From: Hemiscyllium ocellatum
Taxonomy: Eukaryota
NCBI RefSeq assembly: GCF_020745735.1
Contig: NC_083409.1
Span: forward strand, 24,324,048-24,388,047
Length of the DNA: 64,000 nucleotides
Reading direction: 5' to 3'
Shown here: positions 9,900 to 58,790 of the stretch, piece after piece
Position numbering within the stretch: the first letter of the stretch is position 1
Layout of the letters: each line of letters begins with the position of its first letter
The notes under the pieces: model-generated
Databases searched by the model: none
What the model was told of the DNA's origin: nothing
What the model saw: the letters and a program-made list of their open reading frames with translations, nothing else
Program-made: the position numbers and the translations under genes

Positions 9900-10220
9900 G
9901 GGTGGCACGGTGGCACAGTGGTTAGCACTGCTGCCTCACAGCGCCTGAGTCCCGGGTTCAATTCCCGACTCAGGCGACTGACTGTGTGGAGTTTGCACGT
10001 TCTCCCCGTGTCTGCATGGGTTTCCTCCGGGTGCTCCGGTTTCCTCCCACAGTCCAAAGATGTGCGGGTCAGGTGAATTGGCTATGCTAAATTGCCTGTA
10101 GTGTTAGGTAGGGGTAAATGTAGGGGTATGGGTGGGTTGCGCTTCGGCGGGTCGGTGTGGACTTGTTGGGCCGAAGGGCCTGTTTCCACACTGTAAGTCT
10201 AATCTAAGTCTAATCTAATC
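9900..10220 (+). mobile_element. HE1-type tRNA-derived SINE, near full length and young-looking
   Basis: tRNA-like head TGGCACAGTGGTTAG...GGTTCAATTCC, conserved core TGTGTGGAGTTTGCACGTTCTCCCCGTGTCTGC, (TCTAA)n tail. Confidence 0.85.
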
Positions 10221-45500: not shown

Positions 45501-48500
45501 AATGTTTCAAGAAAGTGAGGATTCTGGGTAAGGGAAAACTGTGTCAGATGATGTCTTAGGAGTTTAGAAGGTACAAAGTGAGAAACTTCAAAGCAACCCT
45601 GACCATAGCAAAACCAATAAAGAGGGAGCTGGCAAAAACCATGTATCGGGAAAGGATCACGTCAAGGATTACATCAGGACTGCTTGAAGGGACAAATCCT
45701 TCACTCAGAGTCATAGAGTACAAAAACAGACCCCTCGGTCAGACCGACCATGCCAAACTAAACTACTCCCACCTGCCTGTGCTCGGCCCATACCCCTCCA
45801 TACATTTCTTATCCATGTACTTAATCAAATGTCTTTTAAATGTTGTAACTGTACCCGCATACACCACTTCCTCTGGAAGTTCATTCCACACACGACCCAC
45901 TCTCTATGTAAAGAGGTTGCACCTCATGTCCCTTTTAAATTTTTCTCCTCTCTCCTTAAAAATAAGCTCCCCAGTCTTGAAAGTTCCCACGTGATTTTAT
46001 AAACCTCAATACGTCAATCTCCTGTACTTCTCCACATATAAGGATGTCTATAAACACCAGTCTTTCTTAACATTCTCCAAAGACTTACTCCAGATCTTTC
46101 CACAGTAGTGGATGGTGTTCAATCTCAGTGAGTGTCGCTCTCTGCTCTGCTGGTGCTAACAGGCACTCCACAAAATCTCTGGCTTCAGCATTCTTCAGGT
46201 CACAAAGACTGTCATCGAAAGAGGGGTTATTCTCAAGTTCATCCTTCTTACTCCCGTAGACGTCCTTCCCACCAGACACGACAAAGTGTAAGAGGCGTCC
46301 TAGTGCCTGTCTCATAAACAGAACAACTTTAACGGAAAAAATACACAGTCGTCCGGACCCTGGCTTCACAAACATACCATTCAGGTAACATTTTAGAAAT
46401 TAATCTGTTTTGATTAATTTCTAAACAAAGCTTTTCAATACACTCAGGTACATGTGACAATAAATCAAATCAAAATTCTCTCAATTTTTTGGTTTGAAAT
46501 TTTTGGTGAGCACCCAATATTCTCTCGAGTTCAGTGTCGTTCCTTGTAAATGGTGCCTCCTGGGCCCAATGCCCAGGAGGTTGCCTTTCCTGCCCTATAT
46601 CTGGTGATGTGATCAGGGAGGGCTGCTGTAAATAGTGAGCCGAATCCTGCACTGCGATTTCACACATGCCCTCATGGACTGCTCCCTGAAAGTGACCCTA
46701 CCCCGTTCCTTCATGGCCCACAGCAGGGTACTGAGGCCGATTGCGGAGTACAGTCCATGACCACTGCTGTTAGGATCTACAAATTCAGTGGTGGAGCCAG
46801 CTATCCTCCGAGACCGATATAAAAACAAAAATTGCGAGAGAAACTCAGCAGGTCTGGCAGCATTTCTGGAGAGAGAAATACAGAGTTTTCACTCTTCTTT
46901 GAAATTTACATCCTTCAGAAACTCAGTTCTGAAGAAGAGTCCCACAAGACTCGAGACATTAATTCTCTTTCTCCCTCCACAGATGCTGCCAGACCTGCTG
47001 AGTTTCTCCAGTATTTTTCTTGTTATTATTTCAGATTTTCATCATCTGCAGAATTTTGCTTTACCCTCCCAGGTCACATGACTCTGTTCCAAAACGTTAC
47101 CTGCCGGAAAACCTCAAAGACATGGGGAGAATGTGCAAACTCCACACAGACAGTCACCCGAGGCTGGAATCGAACCTGGGTGCCTGGCACTGTGAGGCAG
47201 CAGTGCTAACCACTGAGCCACCGTGCCACTCCACCTTCTACAAATTTCACTGAGATGTGGGGCAGCAGAGGCTTAGTGGTGTTACTAATCGAGTAACAGA
47301 CCCAAGTAATGCTTGGAGGAGCATTTGGAGACTCTGGGTCTATACTCAGAGTTGAGAAAGATGAGGGGGAACCTTTTTGAAACTCATTGCTACAGAGGGC
47401 TGTGGAGGCCAAGTCACTGACTGTATTGAAGACACATTCTTGATTGGTAAGGGGATCATGGGTTACAGGAAGGACACAGGAGAATGGGATTGAGAAAAAC
47501 ATATCAGCCATGATCAAACAATGGAGCAGACGCAATGAACCCAAATGGCCTAATTCTGCTCCTATATCTTATGTCCTGGAATTTGAATTCAATAAAAATC
47601 TATTGATGACCATGAGTCTGCTTCCCATTGTCAGGAAAAACCCATCTGGTTCACTAATATCCTTTCGGGAAGGAGAGCTGCCATCCTTACCCATCTGGCT
47701 TATTTGTGATTCCAGAGCCACAGCAATGTGGTAACCCCTCTCAGAAATGGCGGAGCAAGGGATTCCATTGTGGCAATCGCTACAAAGGAGAAAAGGAATG
47801 GAAATGGATGGGCCGCCAATTCAGGAACCAGAAACAACATGGATTACAGCGGTTCAGGAAGGCAGCTGAACACAGTCTTTCCAAGGGGTGAAGAGGAGTG
47901 AGCAATAAACGCTGGCCCAGCCAGTGATGCCCACGTGCAACAAATGAATTTTTAAAAAAAAGTTCAGCTTCTTCCCTCACTATCTCTCCACAGCCTTGAA
48001 AACTGAACTTAGCATTATCTGGCCAAATCCATTGCCAATGCCTGATTTACCCAGTCTCCCTTTGATTCGTCCAGACCCTTCAATCTCATCCCTCAAGAGA
48101 GAAAACAAGTCACCACAGTGTGGACCTGCACGTCTGCTTTGAACAGCTCATCCTCAGTGAACGTTGCCTTTGGCAAGTGTTCCAGTTTCTGCAGGATTTC
48201 TGAGGCTTCCCAGGTTCCAGGGCAAATCGGCAAAGCTGGGTTCTTATCAAAATGCACACTCTTATCGAAGTCTGCCAGGCGAAAATTTTCTTCAACATCT
48301 GGAGAAAATCAAACCATTTTATTGCTCATATCTCTGCCCAGACACACAGCAAAAAGGCTCCAAACCAGTTTTAAACATATCCATCCATAAATCCATTCAC
48401 TTTCAAACACAATTTGGAATTCTTGGTGTTTCAAATTCATCCATTCCACACAGGTCAGAGTTCCAGTGGCCTTACACTGAGTGGTGGTTTCATGTTGACA

Positions 48501-51500
48501 CTTTTCAGGGTTTAAGAAGCTGAGTAAACCCACGAAGGAGTAAGGAATAGATGGTGTTGCTGATGTTGAGATGAAGTAGGATGGGAGCAGTCTGAACTTT
48601 AGCTTCTAACGTGACCCAGCTGGGTGCAATGATCAGTACCTGAGCTGTGTGCTGTGCTATTGTTAGGGGTGGTGAACTGTTGAACTATACATAAGTCACT
48701 TGGAGCTTGGTCTTCCAGACACAAATGCCATCTTTCACAGGACACTAAAATGTGGAAGTGTTGTGAACAGTGAGGAGGCTAGTGTAGAACTTCAAATAGG
48801 TCTTAGTCAAGTTGGTCACATGAGCAGACAAGGGGCAGATGAAATTTGATAGCGTGAGTTGTGAAGTGATTCCATTGATACAATTAATGTGGAGAGCCAA
48901 TGTCGGGATTTTCCCTGCTTCGAGCGACATGGACAATGGCAGGAAAGCTTGGAAAACATTAACTAGCAAAAGGTCCCATTTCCTGACCAAGCGTTGAATG
49001 ATGAGACACTCATTAGTGAGTGGCAAAAGGCTTATTTAATGCACATTCACTTTCTCACTTAGCCTCCTGATATACAGTTTCCCATTCTCCATCTGCCCCA
49101 TGGAACATGGACAGGAGTAATTCTCGGTGTGCTAAAAGCAGTATTCTGGTGACTTCAGCTCACCACTTTCTTGTCTAACCATCCATCTCATACTACCCTT
49201 CCCCCCATATCTCCCCCCCACCCACCCACAATCCTGCACATCCACTCCCACGCACCCCTTGTTTCCTAGTCCCACAACCTCAATCCCCCACTTCTATCAC
49301 CTCCGCCCATCGCTCCAGTCCCCCACTCCCTCAACCCCTGAATCCACTAATCCCCACTCCCACACCCGTTAATCTACCACGCACACCCACTCCCTCCAAT
49401 ATTCCACCTCACTTTCCTACTCCCACCCCTACCCATTCACCGTCCTCCCATCATCACTCCCACATCGCAATACTCTCCCCCCTCCCACTATCGAGCCGGA
49501 GTACTTAATGATTTGTGTGTTGCGAGAATATGTTGTATACATAAAGAAGTGAGTTTAAGAGGATACCACAAGAAACCTTGTTAGGGCTCATGGAGGAAAA
49601 CCCTCCGTGAAATATGGTAAACTTTACACTTTAAAGAACAGAATCCCTATAGCGTAGAAATAGGCCATCAGCCCAACAAGTCCACACCAATTCTCCGAAG
49701 ACCATCCCACGCAGATCTTACTCTATCTCTGGAACACTGCATTTCCCATGGTTAATCCACACCTAATTTACCCATCCGTGGATACTATAGACAACTTAGC
49801 ATGGCCAATTGACCTAACCTGCACATATTTGGATCTGAGAGGAAACTGAAGCACACAGAGGAACTCACGCAGACTCAGGGAGAATGTGCAAACTCCACAC
49901 AAGCTTCCTGGCAAAACTTTGATATACAACAACCTTGTATACGGAGGTGAATGTGCCACTAATTGAGCTAATGCTGATCCCCACGCACAAGGAGAGAGAA
50001 AAACATGTTCAGCCAGTGAGTGGTTAAGGTGTGGAATGCACTGCCTGAGAGTGTGGTGGAAGCAGCTTCAATTTAAACATTCCGAAGGGACTGAGACTGT
50101 TATTTGAAAAGGAACAATGTGCAGGTGACAGGGAGAAGGCAGGAGAATGACACTCAGTGATTTGCTCAGAGAGGATGTGTGGAATGGCATCCGTGCGCAC
50201 TGTAACAATTCTGTGAGGCTTTGAAAGGCACTAAAAGAAATGTAAGCTGTACGTTTGTTTTCCTCAGTCAAGTACCTGTCAGAAATCCTTAAAGTAAACT
50301 CAAGTAAAATCCTGTCAATTTTACAAGAACCCACAATCACCTCCTGTTGCCTCACAGCCTTAGCATTTAGATCATTCAATCTTTTAAAGACAGGATGGAT
50401 AGGCTGAGAGTTTTTTTTCCCACTGGAGGGTAGGAGGTTGAGAGATGATCTTATAGAAGTTTTTAAAATCATGAGGGGTATAGGTAGACTTAATGGTTAG
50501 TGTGTCTTTTCCCTAGGGTGGGGGACTTCAAAGTGAGGGGGCACATGTTTAAGGTGAGAGGAGAGAGACTTCAAAAACACATGAGGGACAAATTGCTTAC
50601 ATAGAGGATGGTTCATGTGTGTAGAATAACCTACTGATGAAGTGGTGGATGTGGGCACACTCACAATGTTTAAAAGACAGTGGGATAAGTCCATGAACAG
50701 GAAGGGTTTGGAGGGATACGGGACTAGTTTAGTTTGGAATCATGTTCATCATGGACTGGTTGGACTGAAGGGTTTGTTTCAATGCTGTATGACTCGATGA
50801 CACCTCCTTTATTCTTGCACATCTCCTCTTTCTGCAGTTATTTAAAAGCTGCTCATTGTTAATCTCTCCTAATTCTGACAAAAGGTATTCGAATTAAAAT
50901 GTTAACTCTGTTTCACTTTCCACAGATGCTAATTCTCTCTGCTGAATAGTTCCAGCATTTTCCTCATTATATTAACACTGGTTAATAAGATAGAGGAGAC
51001 CGCCTCTACAAATGGACACAGATTGAAACTGTTGTTGGCCCCTGAGTATTGCAATGCCTCATCACGAGCACCAAGACATCACTTTGCTGATGGGAAGAAG
51101 GACACTACCTGTGAGATCCTTCATGATTGTTTGGTCCGTCTGTGCCTCCACATGCTGCCCTCAAAGTGGCTGCATTGACAAAGAAACTTTTTGTCTATTC
51201 ATTCATGGGATGAGGGCATCGCTGACCAATCTGACATTTATTGCCCATCCCTAATTGCCCAGAGGGCAGTTAAGAGTTAACCACATTGCAGTTGGTCTGG
51301 AGTCACATGTAGGCCAGACTGGGTAAGGATGGCAGATTCCTTCCCTCAAGGACATTAGTGAACCAGATGGATTTTTCCAACAGTGGACAATGGACTCATG
51401 GTCATCATTAGACTCTTAATTCCAGATTTTACTGAGTTCAAATTGCACCATCTGCCATGGCAGGATTCAAACCCAGGTCCCCAGAATATTACCTGAGACT

Positions 51501-54061
51501 CTGGATTAACAGTCTGGACATAATGCCACTAGGCCAGTGCCTCACACAATTCCTGCTGGAATGTGTGTTTGCAAAGTAAGTCTGGAGAAAGATGCAGTGT
51601 TTGTGTCGAGGTTCGTCCCGAGCAGCTCTGTGACATGTATCTGTGCCCTACGGTCTGTTCCTTGGGACGCACACCGAGACAGACACTGACTGCACCTGGA
51701 GGACCACCAACTCAGTGAAAGATGCTCTTCAAAACATATTGGTCTTCCAGAGCAAGGAGTTGACCCTGTCCAAATGTTGCAGACTGGCACATTCCAAGGT
51801 CCAGAACTACGTACTGAGGGATGAACTAAAGCTTGGGGCAGCTGCCATCAAGGCACAGTGGGGGAGGACCACCAACTAAGGTCTCTCTGCTGAACTTAAA
51901 TGGGGTTCATTCAGTTATCAGACCCTCCCGGTGCCTCAAACGTATATAAATGTAATCTTATATATGTAACAAATGCCTTGCTGGATAGAATCAAACATCA
52001 ATGTTTCTTTTGTTTCTTCATAAGCTATTGCAGAGAAACAAACTGCTTTAGTGACTATGTATGTATATAAAGATTTTTTTATTAATAAAACATTTTTGAA
52101 ATTGAAAAAAGCTGCTACTCCTGCTGAGTGTTTTCATATCCTGTCTTTGCTGAAGGTAGCAATCTGCAATATTTGACCCTGTAATTTTTGGGTGAGGTAG
52201 CGTGTGCTTATAACGTGTATCTCGGTAAATTTATGCTTATGAAAGTCTTGAAAAGATTAGTTCCATGTCCAACCTCCACACCCAGACCAGAACACAAAGA
52301 ATCGAACATTTGAGCAGCACAAAGAACTTAACTGAGGACACCCCAGAATTTACCACTGTCCGAAATATATGAAAATGTTTAAGAGTTGTTACCTCTGAGG
52401 ACATTTGTTGGATGCAAATCCCGGTGAGCAAATTTAACCTTGTGCAAAATCTGAAGAGCCTGAACCAACTGCTTCATTATTTTAGGGGCGTCGCTTCGTA
52501 TTTTGTCCGGCCACTTGCTCACACATTCCTCAAGGTTATACTCGCAGAGATCCAGGCACAGGTAATCACAGAAATCATCGCTTTCACAATAACGGAGGGT
52601 CGCGAAGCGACTGCTGCCGCTGATTTTGGGATCACGGAGGCAATCCAATTCTCTGTTGGCTGCCTCGACACCTTTCCTGTGACACTTCACTGCCACTTCG
52701 ATCTCATTGTTAAAGAACCCGAGGTAGACCTCCGTCGCGCTGCGTTCTCCTGTAATTTTATAATCCGGGATTCTGGATAGTTTCAGCTTCCCAATGGGGT
52801 CACGGGGCTCCACCTGCAGTTTCCGCAGGCTCTCTTTCCAGCGTACGCTGTGCTCCTTCCATCTTGAAGGAGGTCTTCCTTCATTGGGGGCCACCTTCTC
52901 TGCCCCATGCTTAATCAGCACGTTTTTTGTTTTATTGTCATACTTCCTTATGGCTATCCTTAACGGCGTGTCCCCGCGGTTGTTCGCGCGGGATACATCA
53001 GCCCCCCTCTTACACAGCATCTCTGTCAACGAGGTATCCTGGTTTTCCACAGCTGCGAGCAGGGCCGTCTGGCCTGAACGGTCTTGTGCGTTGATGTCCG
53101 TGCAATCACTCTCCAGCAGAAGTTTAGCCACCCTGGGCATCTTCTTCTCGACTGCAAGGATCAGTGGCGTTTTCCCCTCGGCGTCCTGAAGATTGAGATC
53201 CTGGGTGCACTTCACCAGCTGTTCCAACAGGGGCCTTCGGAGGGTACACCTGCTCAAGGCGACACTCAGGGGCGTGTTGTGATTTCTGTCCATGGCATTA
53301 ACATCTGCTCCCCGTTTCAACAGAGCCTCCACGACCTCCTCGTTGTCCCTCTCCAAGGCGTGGAGCAGTGGCGTCTTGCGGATGTTGTCGAACGCATTGA
53401 CATCGGCGCGCATTTCATCCAACAGGATCTCGACAATGTCCTTGCGGCCTTTCATCACGGCGTCAATCAGGGCTGTCTTGCCGCCTTTGCCCACACTGGC
53501 CCGGGCGCCGGGCACTTGCCTGCCCTTGTTCACATCAGCGCGCTGCTGGAAGAGGAAGCGCAGCGCCTCCTCATGGCCGTACTGCGCCGCCTCCATGAGG
53601 GCGGTGAAGCCGTTGTGGTCCGCCTCGTCGATGGCCGCGCCCAAGGCGAGAAACCTCTTCAGCAGGCTCACGTTGCCCGTGATCGCGGCGACGATGAAGG
53701 GCGAGGCGCCATTCTTCTTCGGCAGCCCGGGCTCGGCCCCGTGTTGCAGCAGCAAGTCGGCCATGTCTTCATGGTCCGCTTGCACAGCGTTAAGCAGCGG
53801 CGACCATTGGTATTGCGGCTCCCGGTAGTTCACGTCCACTCTGTTGCTCGCAAGCAACTTCTTCATAATGTCGAGGTGACCTTTCTGCGCAACTTTACAT
53901 AAAATGGAGCCAACCTCGTCAACACTGAGATTTTCCAAGGCGCCCTCGTCAATTAACTTCTCAGCCCGAGAGAGATCTGGATTGTTAGACTCACAGACAC
54001 CTCGAAGCTCATCACCAAGTCTGGTCCCATCGACCATTTGTTCCTCTCCTTGTTCTGCCAT
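33456..54061 (-). CDS. RNASEL: 2-5A-dependent ribonuclease L (RNase L); 6 coding exons, 2439 nt, 812 aa predicted, no disabling lesion
   Basis: Exons 54061-52393, 48298-48126, 46306-46089, 40864-40732, 39090-38966 and 33576-33456 join with phases 1,0,2,0,2 into one open frame. Ankyrin repeats + kinase-like domain + KEN/RNase domain (KWTEK, YKDTTSDLLKFIRNLIQH, LFPDLIVAVY), colinear with mammalian RNASEL. Confidence 0.96.
38966..39090 (-). CDS. RNASEL: RNASEL coding exon 5: RNase catalytic motif
   Basis: TTCCTTCTAG|G acceptor. VDSVLLNDMNK...YKDTTSDLLKFIRNLIQHFDEKK. Donor GA|GTATGT. Confidence 0.93.
39430..40437 (-). repeat. Partner copy of the inverted ~1-kb duplication at 8867-9883
   Basis: Reverse-complement colinearity with 8867-9883. 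Confidence 0.9.
40732..40864 (-). CDS. RNASEL: RNASEL coding exon 4: start of RNase (KEN) domain
   Basis: CCCCTCCAG|C acceptor. KAQLIQSLANEKDVVKRNHDSQIVQILN...SFHKWTEK. Donor AAG|GTACAC. Confidence 0.92.
41222..41473. mobile_element. Very young Penelope terminal fold-back insertion with 16-bp TSD and hammerhead core
   Basis: TSD TAGAAACATACATAGC at 41222-41237 and 41458-41473. Perfect 89-bp arms 41235-41323 / 41335-41423. Confidence 0.9.
46089..46306 (-). CDS. RNASEL: RNASEL coding exon 3: kinase-like C-lobe
   Basis: GACAG|GCA acceptor. ALGRLLHFVVSGG...AEARDFVECLL...EHHPLLWKDL. Donor GA|GTAAGT. Confidence 0.92.
48126..48298 (-). CDS. RNASEL: RNASEL coding exon 2: DFD motif and activation/P+1 segment
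   Basis: Acceptor TTCTCCAG|AT. DVEENFRLADFDKSVHFDKNPALPICPGTWEASEILQKLEHLPKATFTEDELFKADVQ. Donor CAG|GTCCAC is weak; an in-frame alternative GTG|GTGACT lies 12 nt further. Confidence 0.88.
51560..52110 (+). mobile_element. Tx1/L1-clade LINE 3' end
   Basis: YGLFLGTHTETD...KCCRLAHSKVQNYVLRDELKLGAAAIKAQWG ORF2 C-terminus, then AATAAA and an A-rich tail. Confidence 0.75.
52393..54061 (-). CDS. RNASEL: RNASEL first coding exon: ankyrin repeats and kinase-like N-lobe to catalytic loop
   Basis: Acceptor TTCCTTCCCAACAG| at 54087, ATG at 54061 (MAEQGEEQ). [56 protein letters not shown]. Donor GAG|GTAACA. Confidence 0.96.
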
Positions 54062-58239: not shown

Positions 58240-58790
58240 TAAGAGCACTGCATCAGGAAACGCGTCCTTTTTAAAACGCTTTCACTTTCTATAGCTCGTG
58301 AACAGCGAGCAAAGCAAGCTGAAATTAAAACAAAGACTGCAATATTCAGCTTATGAAATGGACCAACTAGTCTACTCAAACACCGCTTGTCCGACTCTCC
58401 TTGCCCTTATGCCATCTTCCAAAACAATAAACATGCGAGAGGCATGGATTTCGTGCAGCGGTGACCCTTGCAACGTTTCGTCTGCGTTCAGAAATGGGGT
58501 GTGGCTTTGTTTGCAATGCTGTGGAGTGCACTCTGATAGTCCTGCTTCCACCCCCTGCACATCAGGCGATACTGTTGAGGAAAACAGTAATGTTTCACAA
58601 GCGAGCGCGACTCAGAACGCTTCCTCTAAGTACAAGACAGCTCAGCAAAACACTTTCCTGTCCACTGTGGACGGCGTGGTTACCGAGAAACTATTGGGAA
58701 ATGTCCAACGTGCTTACCTTTCAATAACAACCACAGAGTGAGTCAAAGCACTTCACAGCCGACTAAAAAAAACGTGTGAACACTGGCGAT
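58240..58790. promoter_or_regulatory. CpG-enriched candidate RNASEL promoter/first-exon region with a consensus ISRE
   Basis: AGAAAGTGAAAGC on - (58278-58290). About two dozen CpG in ~550 nt against CpG-poor flanks. Consensus minus-strand donor AAG|GTAAGC at 58718/58717. It is the main non-repeat CpG-rich island upstream of the coding exon. Confidence 0.65.

Follow-up and report, generated by a model that had tools for sequence, protein, structure and literature searches.

RNase L, the antiviral endoribonuclease activated by 2′,5′-oligoadenylate (2-5A), is a classic example of a kinase fold put to new use as a scaffold that binds nucleotide and dimerises, and to our knowledge the structural and biochemical work on it has been done entirely on the mammalian proteins. 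These bind ATP in the canonical manner, do not autophosphorylate, and have a non-canonical C-lobe that has been offered as the cause of their inactivity (PMC4718504). RNase L is found in all jawed-vertebrate lineages except the ray-finned fishes, and in yeast the chimaera OASa and RNase L slowed growth only if the RNase was catalytically competent (Chu et al., 2023, PMC10400998); it is already known, then, that cartilaginous-fish RNase L is annotated and that one orthologue, that of the chimaera, has been functionally tested. Here we describe the RNase L gene of the epaulette shark, Hemiscyllium ocellatum, which lies on the minus strand of a 64,000-nucleotide stretch of contig NC_083409.1 (positions 24,324,048 to 24,388,047 of the forward strand; hereafter the window, to whose numbering all coordinates refer). 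We think it likely that the encoded protein retains a complete kinase fold, that this fold is the ancestral form from which part was deleted in-frame in the lobe-finned/tetrapod lineage, and that in the shark it serves as a non-catalytic, ATP-binding scaffold.

The assignment to RNase L is borne out by homology searches, residue conservation, predicted structure and phylogeny. Exon 1 (54061-52393, minus strand; residues 1-556 plus one nucleotide) carries the ankyrin-repeat 2-5A sensor and extends through the kinase N-lobe to the catalytic loop, and a search with it matched '2-5A-dependent ribonuclease' proteins only, comprising 15 chondrichthyan entries at 49-89% identity and tetrapods at ~35-42%, with Pfam ankyrin families on every match. 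The shark protein also contains the Pfam domains Pkinase (PF00069, E = 1.2e-17) and Ribonuc_2-5A (PF06479, E = 1.7e-17), so that ankyrin repeats, kinase homology and KEN RNase domain follow one another in the same order as in mammalian RNase L (human 4OAU/4OAV, pig 4O1O/4O1P). In mammals 2-5A is contacted by W60, K89, F126, E131 and R155 (primate numbering), and the residues aligned to these are conserved in all or nearly all of the 15 chondrichthyans, and the RNase catalytic residues R762 and H767 (aligned to mammalian R667 and H672) are invariant (15/15). The full-length AlphaFold model (mean predicted local distance difference test score, pLDDT, 93.6) matches the human and pig RNase L crystal structures at E ~1e-44, and its ankyrin part matches 4G8K/1WDY. 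In a maximum-likelihood tree of the kinase+KEN region, computed by a quick search without bootstraps, with the columns of the trait itself excluded and with SH-aLRT support values, RNase L forms a clade with 100% support, in which the chondrichthyan subclade (99) adjoins coelacanth and tetrapods, while the lungfish protein, on a long branch, takes no resolved position at the base. IRE1 is a clade of its own (100%) that does not include the shark protein; the latter has ankyrin repeats in place of luminal and transmembrane parts, and its Gly-loop, catalytic-loop Lys and DFG Gly are replaced. Judged from its sequence, the gene is the epaulette shark orthologue of RNase L, and by analogy its RNase would be switched on by 2-5A.

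The gene comprises six coding exons, and each junction was read directly: all introns are GT-AG, the frames join, and the coding sequence of 2439 nucleotides yields 812 residues that are identical (812/812) to RefSeq XP_060686052.1 ('2-5A-dependent ribonuclease-like', Hemiscyllium ocellatum). The kinase motifs reported in the initial annotation (VAVK, ANRELDCL, HRDLHPTN, LADFD, a long insert and KADVQALG) are all exact in this translation. VAVK occupies residues 456-459 and ends in the ATP-binding Lys459 (codon 52685-52687, minus strand), an invariant column in a 110-sequence alignment (15/15 chondrichthyans), while ANRELDCL (residues 468-475) contains the alpha-C Glu471; no GxGxxG loop is present in the kinase-homology domain. 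The catalytic loop HRDLHPTN (residues 546-553; 52403-52426, minus strand) keeps the HRD Arg, the catalytic Asp and the Asn, and has His for the catalytic-loop Lys. Exon 2 (48298-48126, minus strand, 173 nucleotides; residues 557-614) encodes LADFD (residues 564-568) and the entire activation segment. Its DFD (residues 566-568; 48264-48272, minus strand), found in nearly all RNase L, replaces the DFG of the outgroups, and is followed by a long stretch running from KSVHFDKNPALPICPGTWEASEILQKLEHLPKATFTEDELF through PGTWEASEILQKL and ending at KADVQALG (residues 610-617). Exon 3 (46306-46089, minus strand; residues 615-687) begins with ALGRL, the same start as echidna exon 3, and encodes alpha-F onward, the remaining C-lobe and HHPLLW at the kinase/KEN border.

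The activation segment proper (residues 569-611; 48135-48263, minus strand) aligns with that of IRE1 in both phmmer and MAFFT, contains a helix predicted by AlphaFold, and can be divided into a variable loop (569-583), a conserved GTWEASEILQKLEH block with the alpha-EF helix (584-597), and the alpha-EF/alpha-F linker (598-611). The block contains W-E-A-S-E (residues 586-590; 48198-48212, minus strand), the counterpart of the kinase W-x-A-P-E, with Glu590 as the 'APE' glutamate; DFD to ASE spans 25 residues, a normal kinase length. In kinases the APE Glu usually forms a salt bridge with an Arg of subdomain XI, and the expected partner of Glu590 is Arg670 in AEQRATL (codon 46139-46141, minus strand).

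Five independent lines support the reading of the WEASE block as a retained APE/alpha-EF segment, that is, as kinase subdomain VIII. When the kinase+KEN region of the Chiloscyllium orthologue was compared by phmmer with PDB sequences, ~30 shark residues found no partner in human and pig RNase L between DFDKS... and ...DLEALG, whereas the alignment with yeast IRE1 was unbroken and paired GTWEASE...ADVQALG with SGWRAPE...IDIFSMG. The contrast with mammals drawn in the initial annotation is thus reproduced, as primates read HQDLQPQN and DFDKSIKW(T/A) followed by a short run. In the 110-sequence MAFFT alignment WEASE falls under the W-x-A-x-E of every IRE1 and other kinase-KEN protein (38 outgroup proteins); of the 66 kinase-KEN proteins sampled, 52 have the pattern W-x-[ASTV]-x-E, and the only ones without it are the 14 sarcopterygian RNase L. 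The spacing from DFx to the subdomain-IX Asp agrees with this, being 47 residues in the shark and 41-58 in all carriers, as opposed to 18-31 in sarcopterygians and 18 in mammals. Likewise, of the 263 positions of the Pfam Pkinase profile, the match covers 9-262 in the shark and 16-263 in the chimaera, as against 23-152 in Papio and 9-150 in coelacanth; the primate and coelacanth matches stop at DFD, while the shark domain is matched end to end.

Structure prediction supplied the other two lines. Both the full-length and the kinase-only AlphaFold models place a helix at residues 589-597 (SEILQKLEH), the alpha-EF position, and start alpha-F at residue 605, with a block-mean pLDDT of 83-95 across the segment (kinase-only model: pLDDT 93.4, predicted TM-score 0.90). 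Against the PDB, the kinase-only model gave a TMq of 0.75-0.82 for most IRE1 entries and 0.83-0.84 for the constitutively active phosphorylase kinase (PhK; root-mean-square deviation 2.6 Å), but only 0.68-0.70 (4-5 Å) for mammalian RNase L, despite the higher sequence identity of the latter. With VIA-align, PhK scored Z 28.6 (248/266 residues aligned) and IRE1 Z 28.3 (252/266), and the top 50 matches included no RNase L entry. The expectation that the insert would model onto subdomain VIII was thereby borne out. With subdomains VII-IX unbroken (DFx, APE-type Glu, alpha-EF, D-x-x-x-x-G) and the Arg of subdomain XI in place, the kinase fold is complete. One element of the earlier reading did not stand: PGTWEASEIL had been taken for a retained P+1/APE segment, and while HMMER, MAFFT, Pfam and AlphaFold agree on the APE/alpha-EF part, the MAFFT alignment sets the shark 'GT' before Trp under IRE1 'EG' and not under the canonical P+1 Gly-Thr, so that the substrate-binding part of the loop is degenerate and the canonical P+1 Thr not conserved.

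Compared with mammalian RNase L, then, the shark protein shares the 2-5A contacts, the RNase Arg and His, the VAVK Lys, the alpha-C Glu, the catalytic-loop Asp and Asn, DFD, the absence of a Gly-loop and (for echidna) the exon borders, and differs in having HRD for HQD, 28-29 extra residues (ASE/alpha-EF), the subdomain-XI Arg, an end-to-end Pkinase match and a kinase-only model that fits IRE1 and PhK better. With IRE1 (human IRE1alpha, yeast Ire1) it shares the kinase + KEN arrangement, HRD, the full segment with W-x-A-(P/S)-E, the subdomain-IX D-x-x-x-x-G, the subdomain-XI Arg, HP(F/L)(F/L)W at the kinase/KEN junction and the overall fold (TMq ~0.8, Z 28); unlike IRE1, it has ankyrin repeats instead of a luminal sensor and membrane span, lacks GxGxxG and the conserved phospho-acceptor serines, and shows His for the catalytic-loop Lys and DFD for DFG.

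A novelty specific to sharks, as the initial annotation had implied, is rejected: the segment occurs in 15/15 chondrichthyan RNase L, from galeomorph and squalomorph sharks, sawfish, stingray, manta, skate and chimaera, with GTWEASE(I/V)LQK almost invariant throughout. As opposed to these, none of the 14 RNase L of lobe-finned fishes and tetrapods in the trait set has the full segment. Lungfish, axolotl, two caecilians, turtles, squamates, monotremes, marsupials and placentals lack it; coelacanth RNase L has only a remnant of the alpha-EF/alpha-F linker (TEEELKNEDIQAIG), and a second coelacanth paralogue has a degenerate EGTGKAEEKL within a tandemly repeated DFD-like region. The proposal that mammals had lost the segment therefore holds as to its absence, but the loss is older than supposed, the segment being already gone in lungfish, salamander, caecilians and reptiles and partly gone in coelacanth. 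Nor do many tetrapod RNase L carry HRD together with this segment, an alternative that had been raised at the outset: the segment is absent from every tetrapod sampled. We note that the second coelacanth paralogue (Latimeria chalumnae XP_064415558.1, 909 residues) has ~4-5 tandem DFD(E/K)S.SF-like units between DFD and alpha-F, a stretch of 149 residues against 47 in the shark, and keeps HRD.

The residues that normally cooperate with the segment follow a similar distribution. Every chondrichthyan and outgroup protein has the subdomain-XI Arg, which sarcopterygian RNase L has lost but for one aligned Arg in Papio; in the alignment the Arg670 position is retained wherever the segment is retained. 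The HRD motif is found in 14/15 chondrichthyans (HRN in the chimaera), and its Arg is invariant (15/15). Amniotes have HQD, with the rare exceptions HRD (Chinchilla) and HWD (pangolin), and other sarcopterygians HTD, HLD, HQD or HRD. Among sarcopterygians, T, L or Q stands in place of the Arg, which is found only in caecilians, chinchilla and the second coelacanth paralogue. Among the placental RNase L listed, nearly all of them HQD, Chinchilla lanigera alone reads HRDLQPGN, apparently a Q-to-R reversion.

The tree places closest to RNase L a set of teleost and cnidarian kinase-KEN proteins that are not IRE1, although some are annotated 'IRE1-like' and others as uncharacterised; true IRE1 lies outside this set, which probably corresponds to clades C-E of Chu et al. 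(2023, PMC10400998). These proteins read GTxGWEA(T/A)EIL and SDIQVAG, have the closest segment wording (GWEATEIL; SDIQVAGML.YYILSGG.HPFG) and in some cases N-terminal ankyrins, and differ from the shark protein in their own complete catalytic motifs (a GxGxxG-like loop, HRDxKPxN, DFG) and in carrying CARD, PYRIN, TPR or few ankyrins without the nine-repeat 2-5A sensor. As the nearest relatives thus possess the segment in close wording, the full segment is, on sequence comparison, the ancestral state, shared with active-looking kinase-KEN relatives and IRE1, and the short form is derived. The trait needs two changes and not one on the gene tree, solely owing to the long lungfish branch, unresolved at the base of the RNase L clade; a single loss is enough on the species tree. 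The idea that shark RNase L is an intermediate between IRE1 and RNase L is accordingly half right: it does represent a less degenerate stage than the mammalian protein, but IRE1 had to be given up as the direct comparator, the teleost and cnidarian proteins being closer on the tree. As a separate observation, these closest non-RNase L relatives form a teleost and invertebrate family that joins a canonical kinase and KEN RNase to varied N-terminal modules, namely CARD (Salminus), PYRIN (Sardina), a few ankyrin repeats (salmonids) or TPR, and looks like an innate-immune 'sensor-kinase-RNase' toolkit in lineages without RNase L.

Exon structure points to how the segment was lost. Echidna RNASEL has the same borders as the shark gene (exon 1/exon 2 phase 1, exon 2/exon 3 phase 0), and its exon 2 measures 86 nucleotides against 173, so that the segment was lost through the in-frame removal of a net 29 codons from within a conserved exon; a splice-site shift or the loss of an exon is ruled out as the cause by the conserved borders. 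Because Gly-loop loss, the change of the catalytic-loop Lys to His or Gln and that of DFG to DFD are common to nearly all RNase L, sharks included, they predate the deletion. We therefore propose that the pseudokinase-type changes (Gly-loop loss, Lys to His, DFG to DFD) came first and were already in place in sharks, and that the segment was subsequently removed by an in-frame deletion within the same exon in the lobe-finned/tetrapod lineage, leaving remnants in coelacanth and none in lungfish and tetrapods, with the partner Arg lost in all and the HRD Arg in most. The shark kinase domain would bind ATP/Mg and act as a dimerisation scaffold for the RNase as in mammals, and the retained segment, extended as in an active kinase, would contribute to the structure of the C-lobe and would not be a phosphorylation switch; phosphotransfer would not take place.

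Whether the shark domain is instead a kinase that still works, or works weakly, so that autophosphorylation, loop phosphorylation or a contact of the HRD Arg tunes 2-5A-driven dimerisation and RNase activity as in IRE1, must be weighed against this proposal, and we regard it as unlikely. Several points nonetheless count in its favour and against a pure scaffold. Lys459, Glu471, Asp548, Asn553 and Asp566 are intact in sharks and rays, next to a full segment with APE-type Glu and partner Arg, and with Lys459, Asp548 and Asp566 all present the shark protein falls outside the sequence definition of a pseudokinase (loss of the VAIK Lys, HRD Asp or DFG Asp), as does human RNase L, which assays have nevertheless shown to be inactive. 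The invariant HRD Arg of the 15 chondrichthyans is what would be expected if it bound an activation-loop phosphate or acidic group; most chondrichthyans have a Ser or Thr eight residues before the ASE Glu; and the kinase-only model is closest to the active kinases PhK gamma, IRE1, Aurora and DAPK, although the AlphaFold input alignments included IRE1-type sequences and may have biased the loop toward a canonical shape. WNG1, moreover, is active without a Gly-loop and with an acidic residue for the DFG Gly, DF(E) (PMC6442604), which makes Gly-loop loss and DFD weak as arguments against activity. The three points that the initial annotation had itself held against activity, namely the absent GxGxxG, DFD for DFG and the catalytic-loop His, are all confirmed, but as the first and second coexist with activity in WNG1, the motif evidence on phosphotransfer is mixed. 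Every chondrichthyan has His for the catalytic-loop Lys, the P+1 Thr of canonical kinases is not conserved, and no loop Ser or Thr is invariant among chondrichthyans: at the semi-conserved candidate phospho-site, both Chiloscyllium and this shark have Cys. Human and pig RNase L carry the same Lys/Asp/Asn/Asp set and are inactive in assays (PMC4718504). The chimaera Callorhinchus milii (V9K7E5) retains the segment (GTWEASEVLQKM), DFD and the subdomain-XI Arg with the catalytic loop HRNLHPTH, in which the catalytic Asp and the Mg-binding Asn kept by the epaulette shark are replaced (the latter by His); this orthologue lies within the pseudokinase definition, and with OASa it inhibits yeast growth in an RNase-dependent manner (PMC10400998). 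That the segment is kept there counts against a catalytic need for it. On balance, kinase catalysis is probably absent from shark RNase L. [quoted passage not shown]

Our proposal of an ancestral fold and a later deletion also presupposes that the segment is old and that it is translated. That it arose by insertion in the chondrichthyan stem and converged on subdomain VIII, the short tetrapod form being ancestral, could be argued on the grounds that RNase L sequences by themselves do not root the RNase L tree and that on an unrooted tree the number of changes is equal either way. However, the outgroup alignment led us to reject it, and we consider it highly improbable: 38/38 outgroup kinase-KEN proteins, IRE1 included, have W-x-A-x-E at the same place with a matching DFx-to-Asp spacing (41-58 versus 47); teleost GWEATEIL...SDIQVAG is close to shark TWEASEIL...ADVQALG; Arg670 co-occurs with the segment; coelacanth retains the linker remnant TEEELKNEDIQAIG and, in its paralogue, the degenerate EGTGKAEEKL; and the Pfam Pkinase profile aligns through the segment unbroken. 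We give equally little credence to an artefact of the gene model, in which another donor or partial skipping of exon 2 would leave the mature protein without the insert. The annotated donor, CAG/gtccac, is weak past +2, and a candidate in-frame cryptic GT (AGT/gtgcat, ~48257-48256, minus strand) lies directly after DFDKS in exon 2. Its use would nevertheless produce DFDKS/ALGRL and remove the whole segment together with the invariant subdomain-IX Asp612, and the gene models of 15 chondrichthyans, made independently, show the same exon and the same junction, ...AD(V/L)Q/ALGRL. Mean identity among these proteins is 81% in block 584-597, 82% in alpha-F and 77% in the catalytic loop, while the N-terminal loop part (569-583) is variable (50%); the block is thus more constrained than the protein average (62.8%). 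Such conservation across sharks, rays and chimaera argues strongly that exon 2 is translated and functional in cartilaginous fishes. The chimaera V9K7E5, which carries the segment, is a transcript-derived sequence, and we count it against an artefact. The 173-nucleotide exon at 48298-48126 has AG and GT borders, and its predicted splicing in the initial annotation agrees with that of the RefSeq model.

Taken together, a deletion from an ancestral, complete fold would place chondrichthyan RNase L in a natural ordered series that leads from active-looking kinase-KEN relatives to chondrichthyan RNase L, in which the Gly-loop, the catalytic-loop Lys and the DFG Gly are changed while the segment, the HRD Arg and the APE-Glu/Arg pair are intact, and from there to the coelacanth remnants and the lungfish/tetrapod deletion. 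The series would make it possible to test which step abolished catalysis, whether the segment is needed for 2-5A-driven dimerisation, and how tetrapods compensated for its loss. It bears on pseudokinase evolution and on the OAS-RNase L pathway, shark RNase L apparently preserving an early stage in the passage from kinase to scaffold. In our literature search we found no description of the complete chondrichthyan kinase-homology domain or of kinase features of shark RNase L, of the tetrapod C-lobe defect as an intra-exon deletion from the lobe-finned stem, or of the decay of the APE-Glu/Arg pair and the HRD Arg along with the segment; neither kinase motifs nor the activation loop are taken up in the study that traced where the pathway came from (PMC10400998).

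The boundaries of exon 1 rest on its open reading frame and translation, on tblastn with shark orthologues and on the donor AGAG/gtaac, and those of exon 2 on an AG acceptor and a GT donor, a frame that joins exons 1 and 3, and tblastn with three shark proteins. The KEN/RNase domain is encoded by the remaining exons, all on the minus strand: exon 4 (40864-40732) encodes its first part, exon 5 (39090-38966) the portion with the RNase catalytic motif R762-N-L-I-Q-H767 (39000-38983), and exon 6 (33576-33456, stop included) its C-terminus. Upstream of exon 1, positions 58411-58518 (minus strand) show 89% protein identity to residues 5-40, in the N-terminal extension, of Chiloscyllium 'isoform X2', and are probably an alternative upstream coding exon or 5′ untranslated exon of RNASEL. 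Far from the gene, between positions 10000 and 28000 of the window, GC skew switches from +0.25 to +0.32 at 10-14 kb to -0.21 to -0.36 at 14-24 kb, and is still negative (-0.13 to -0.23) up to 28 kb.

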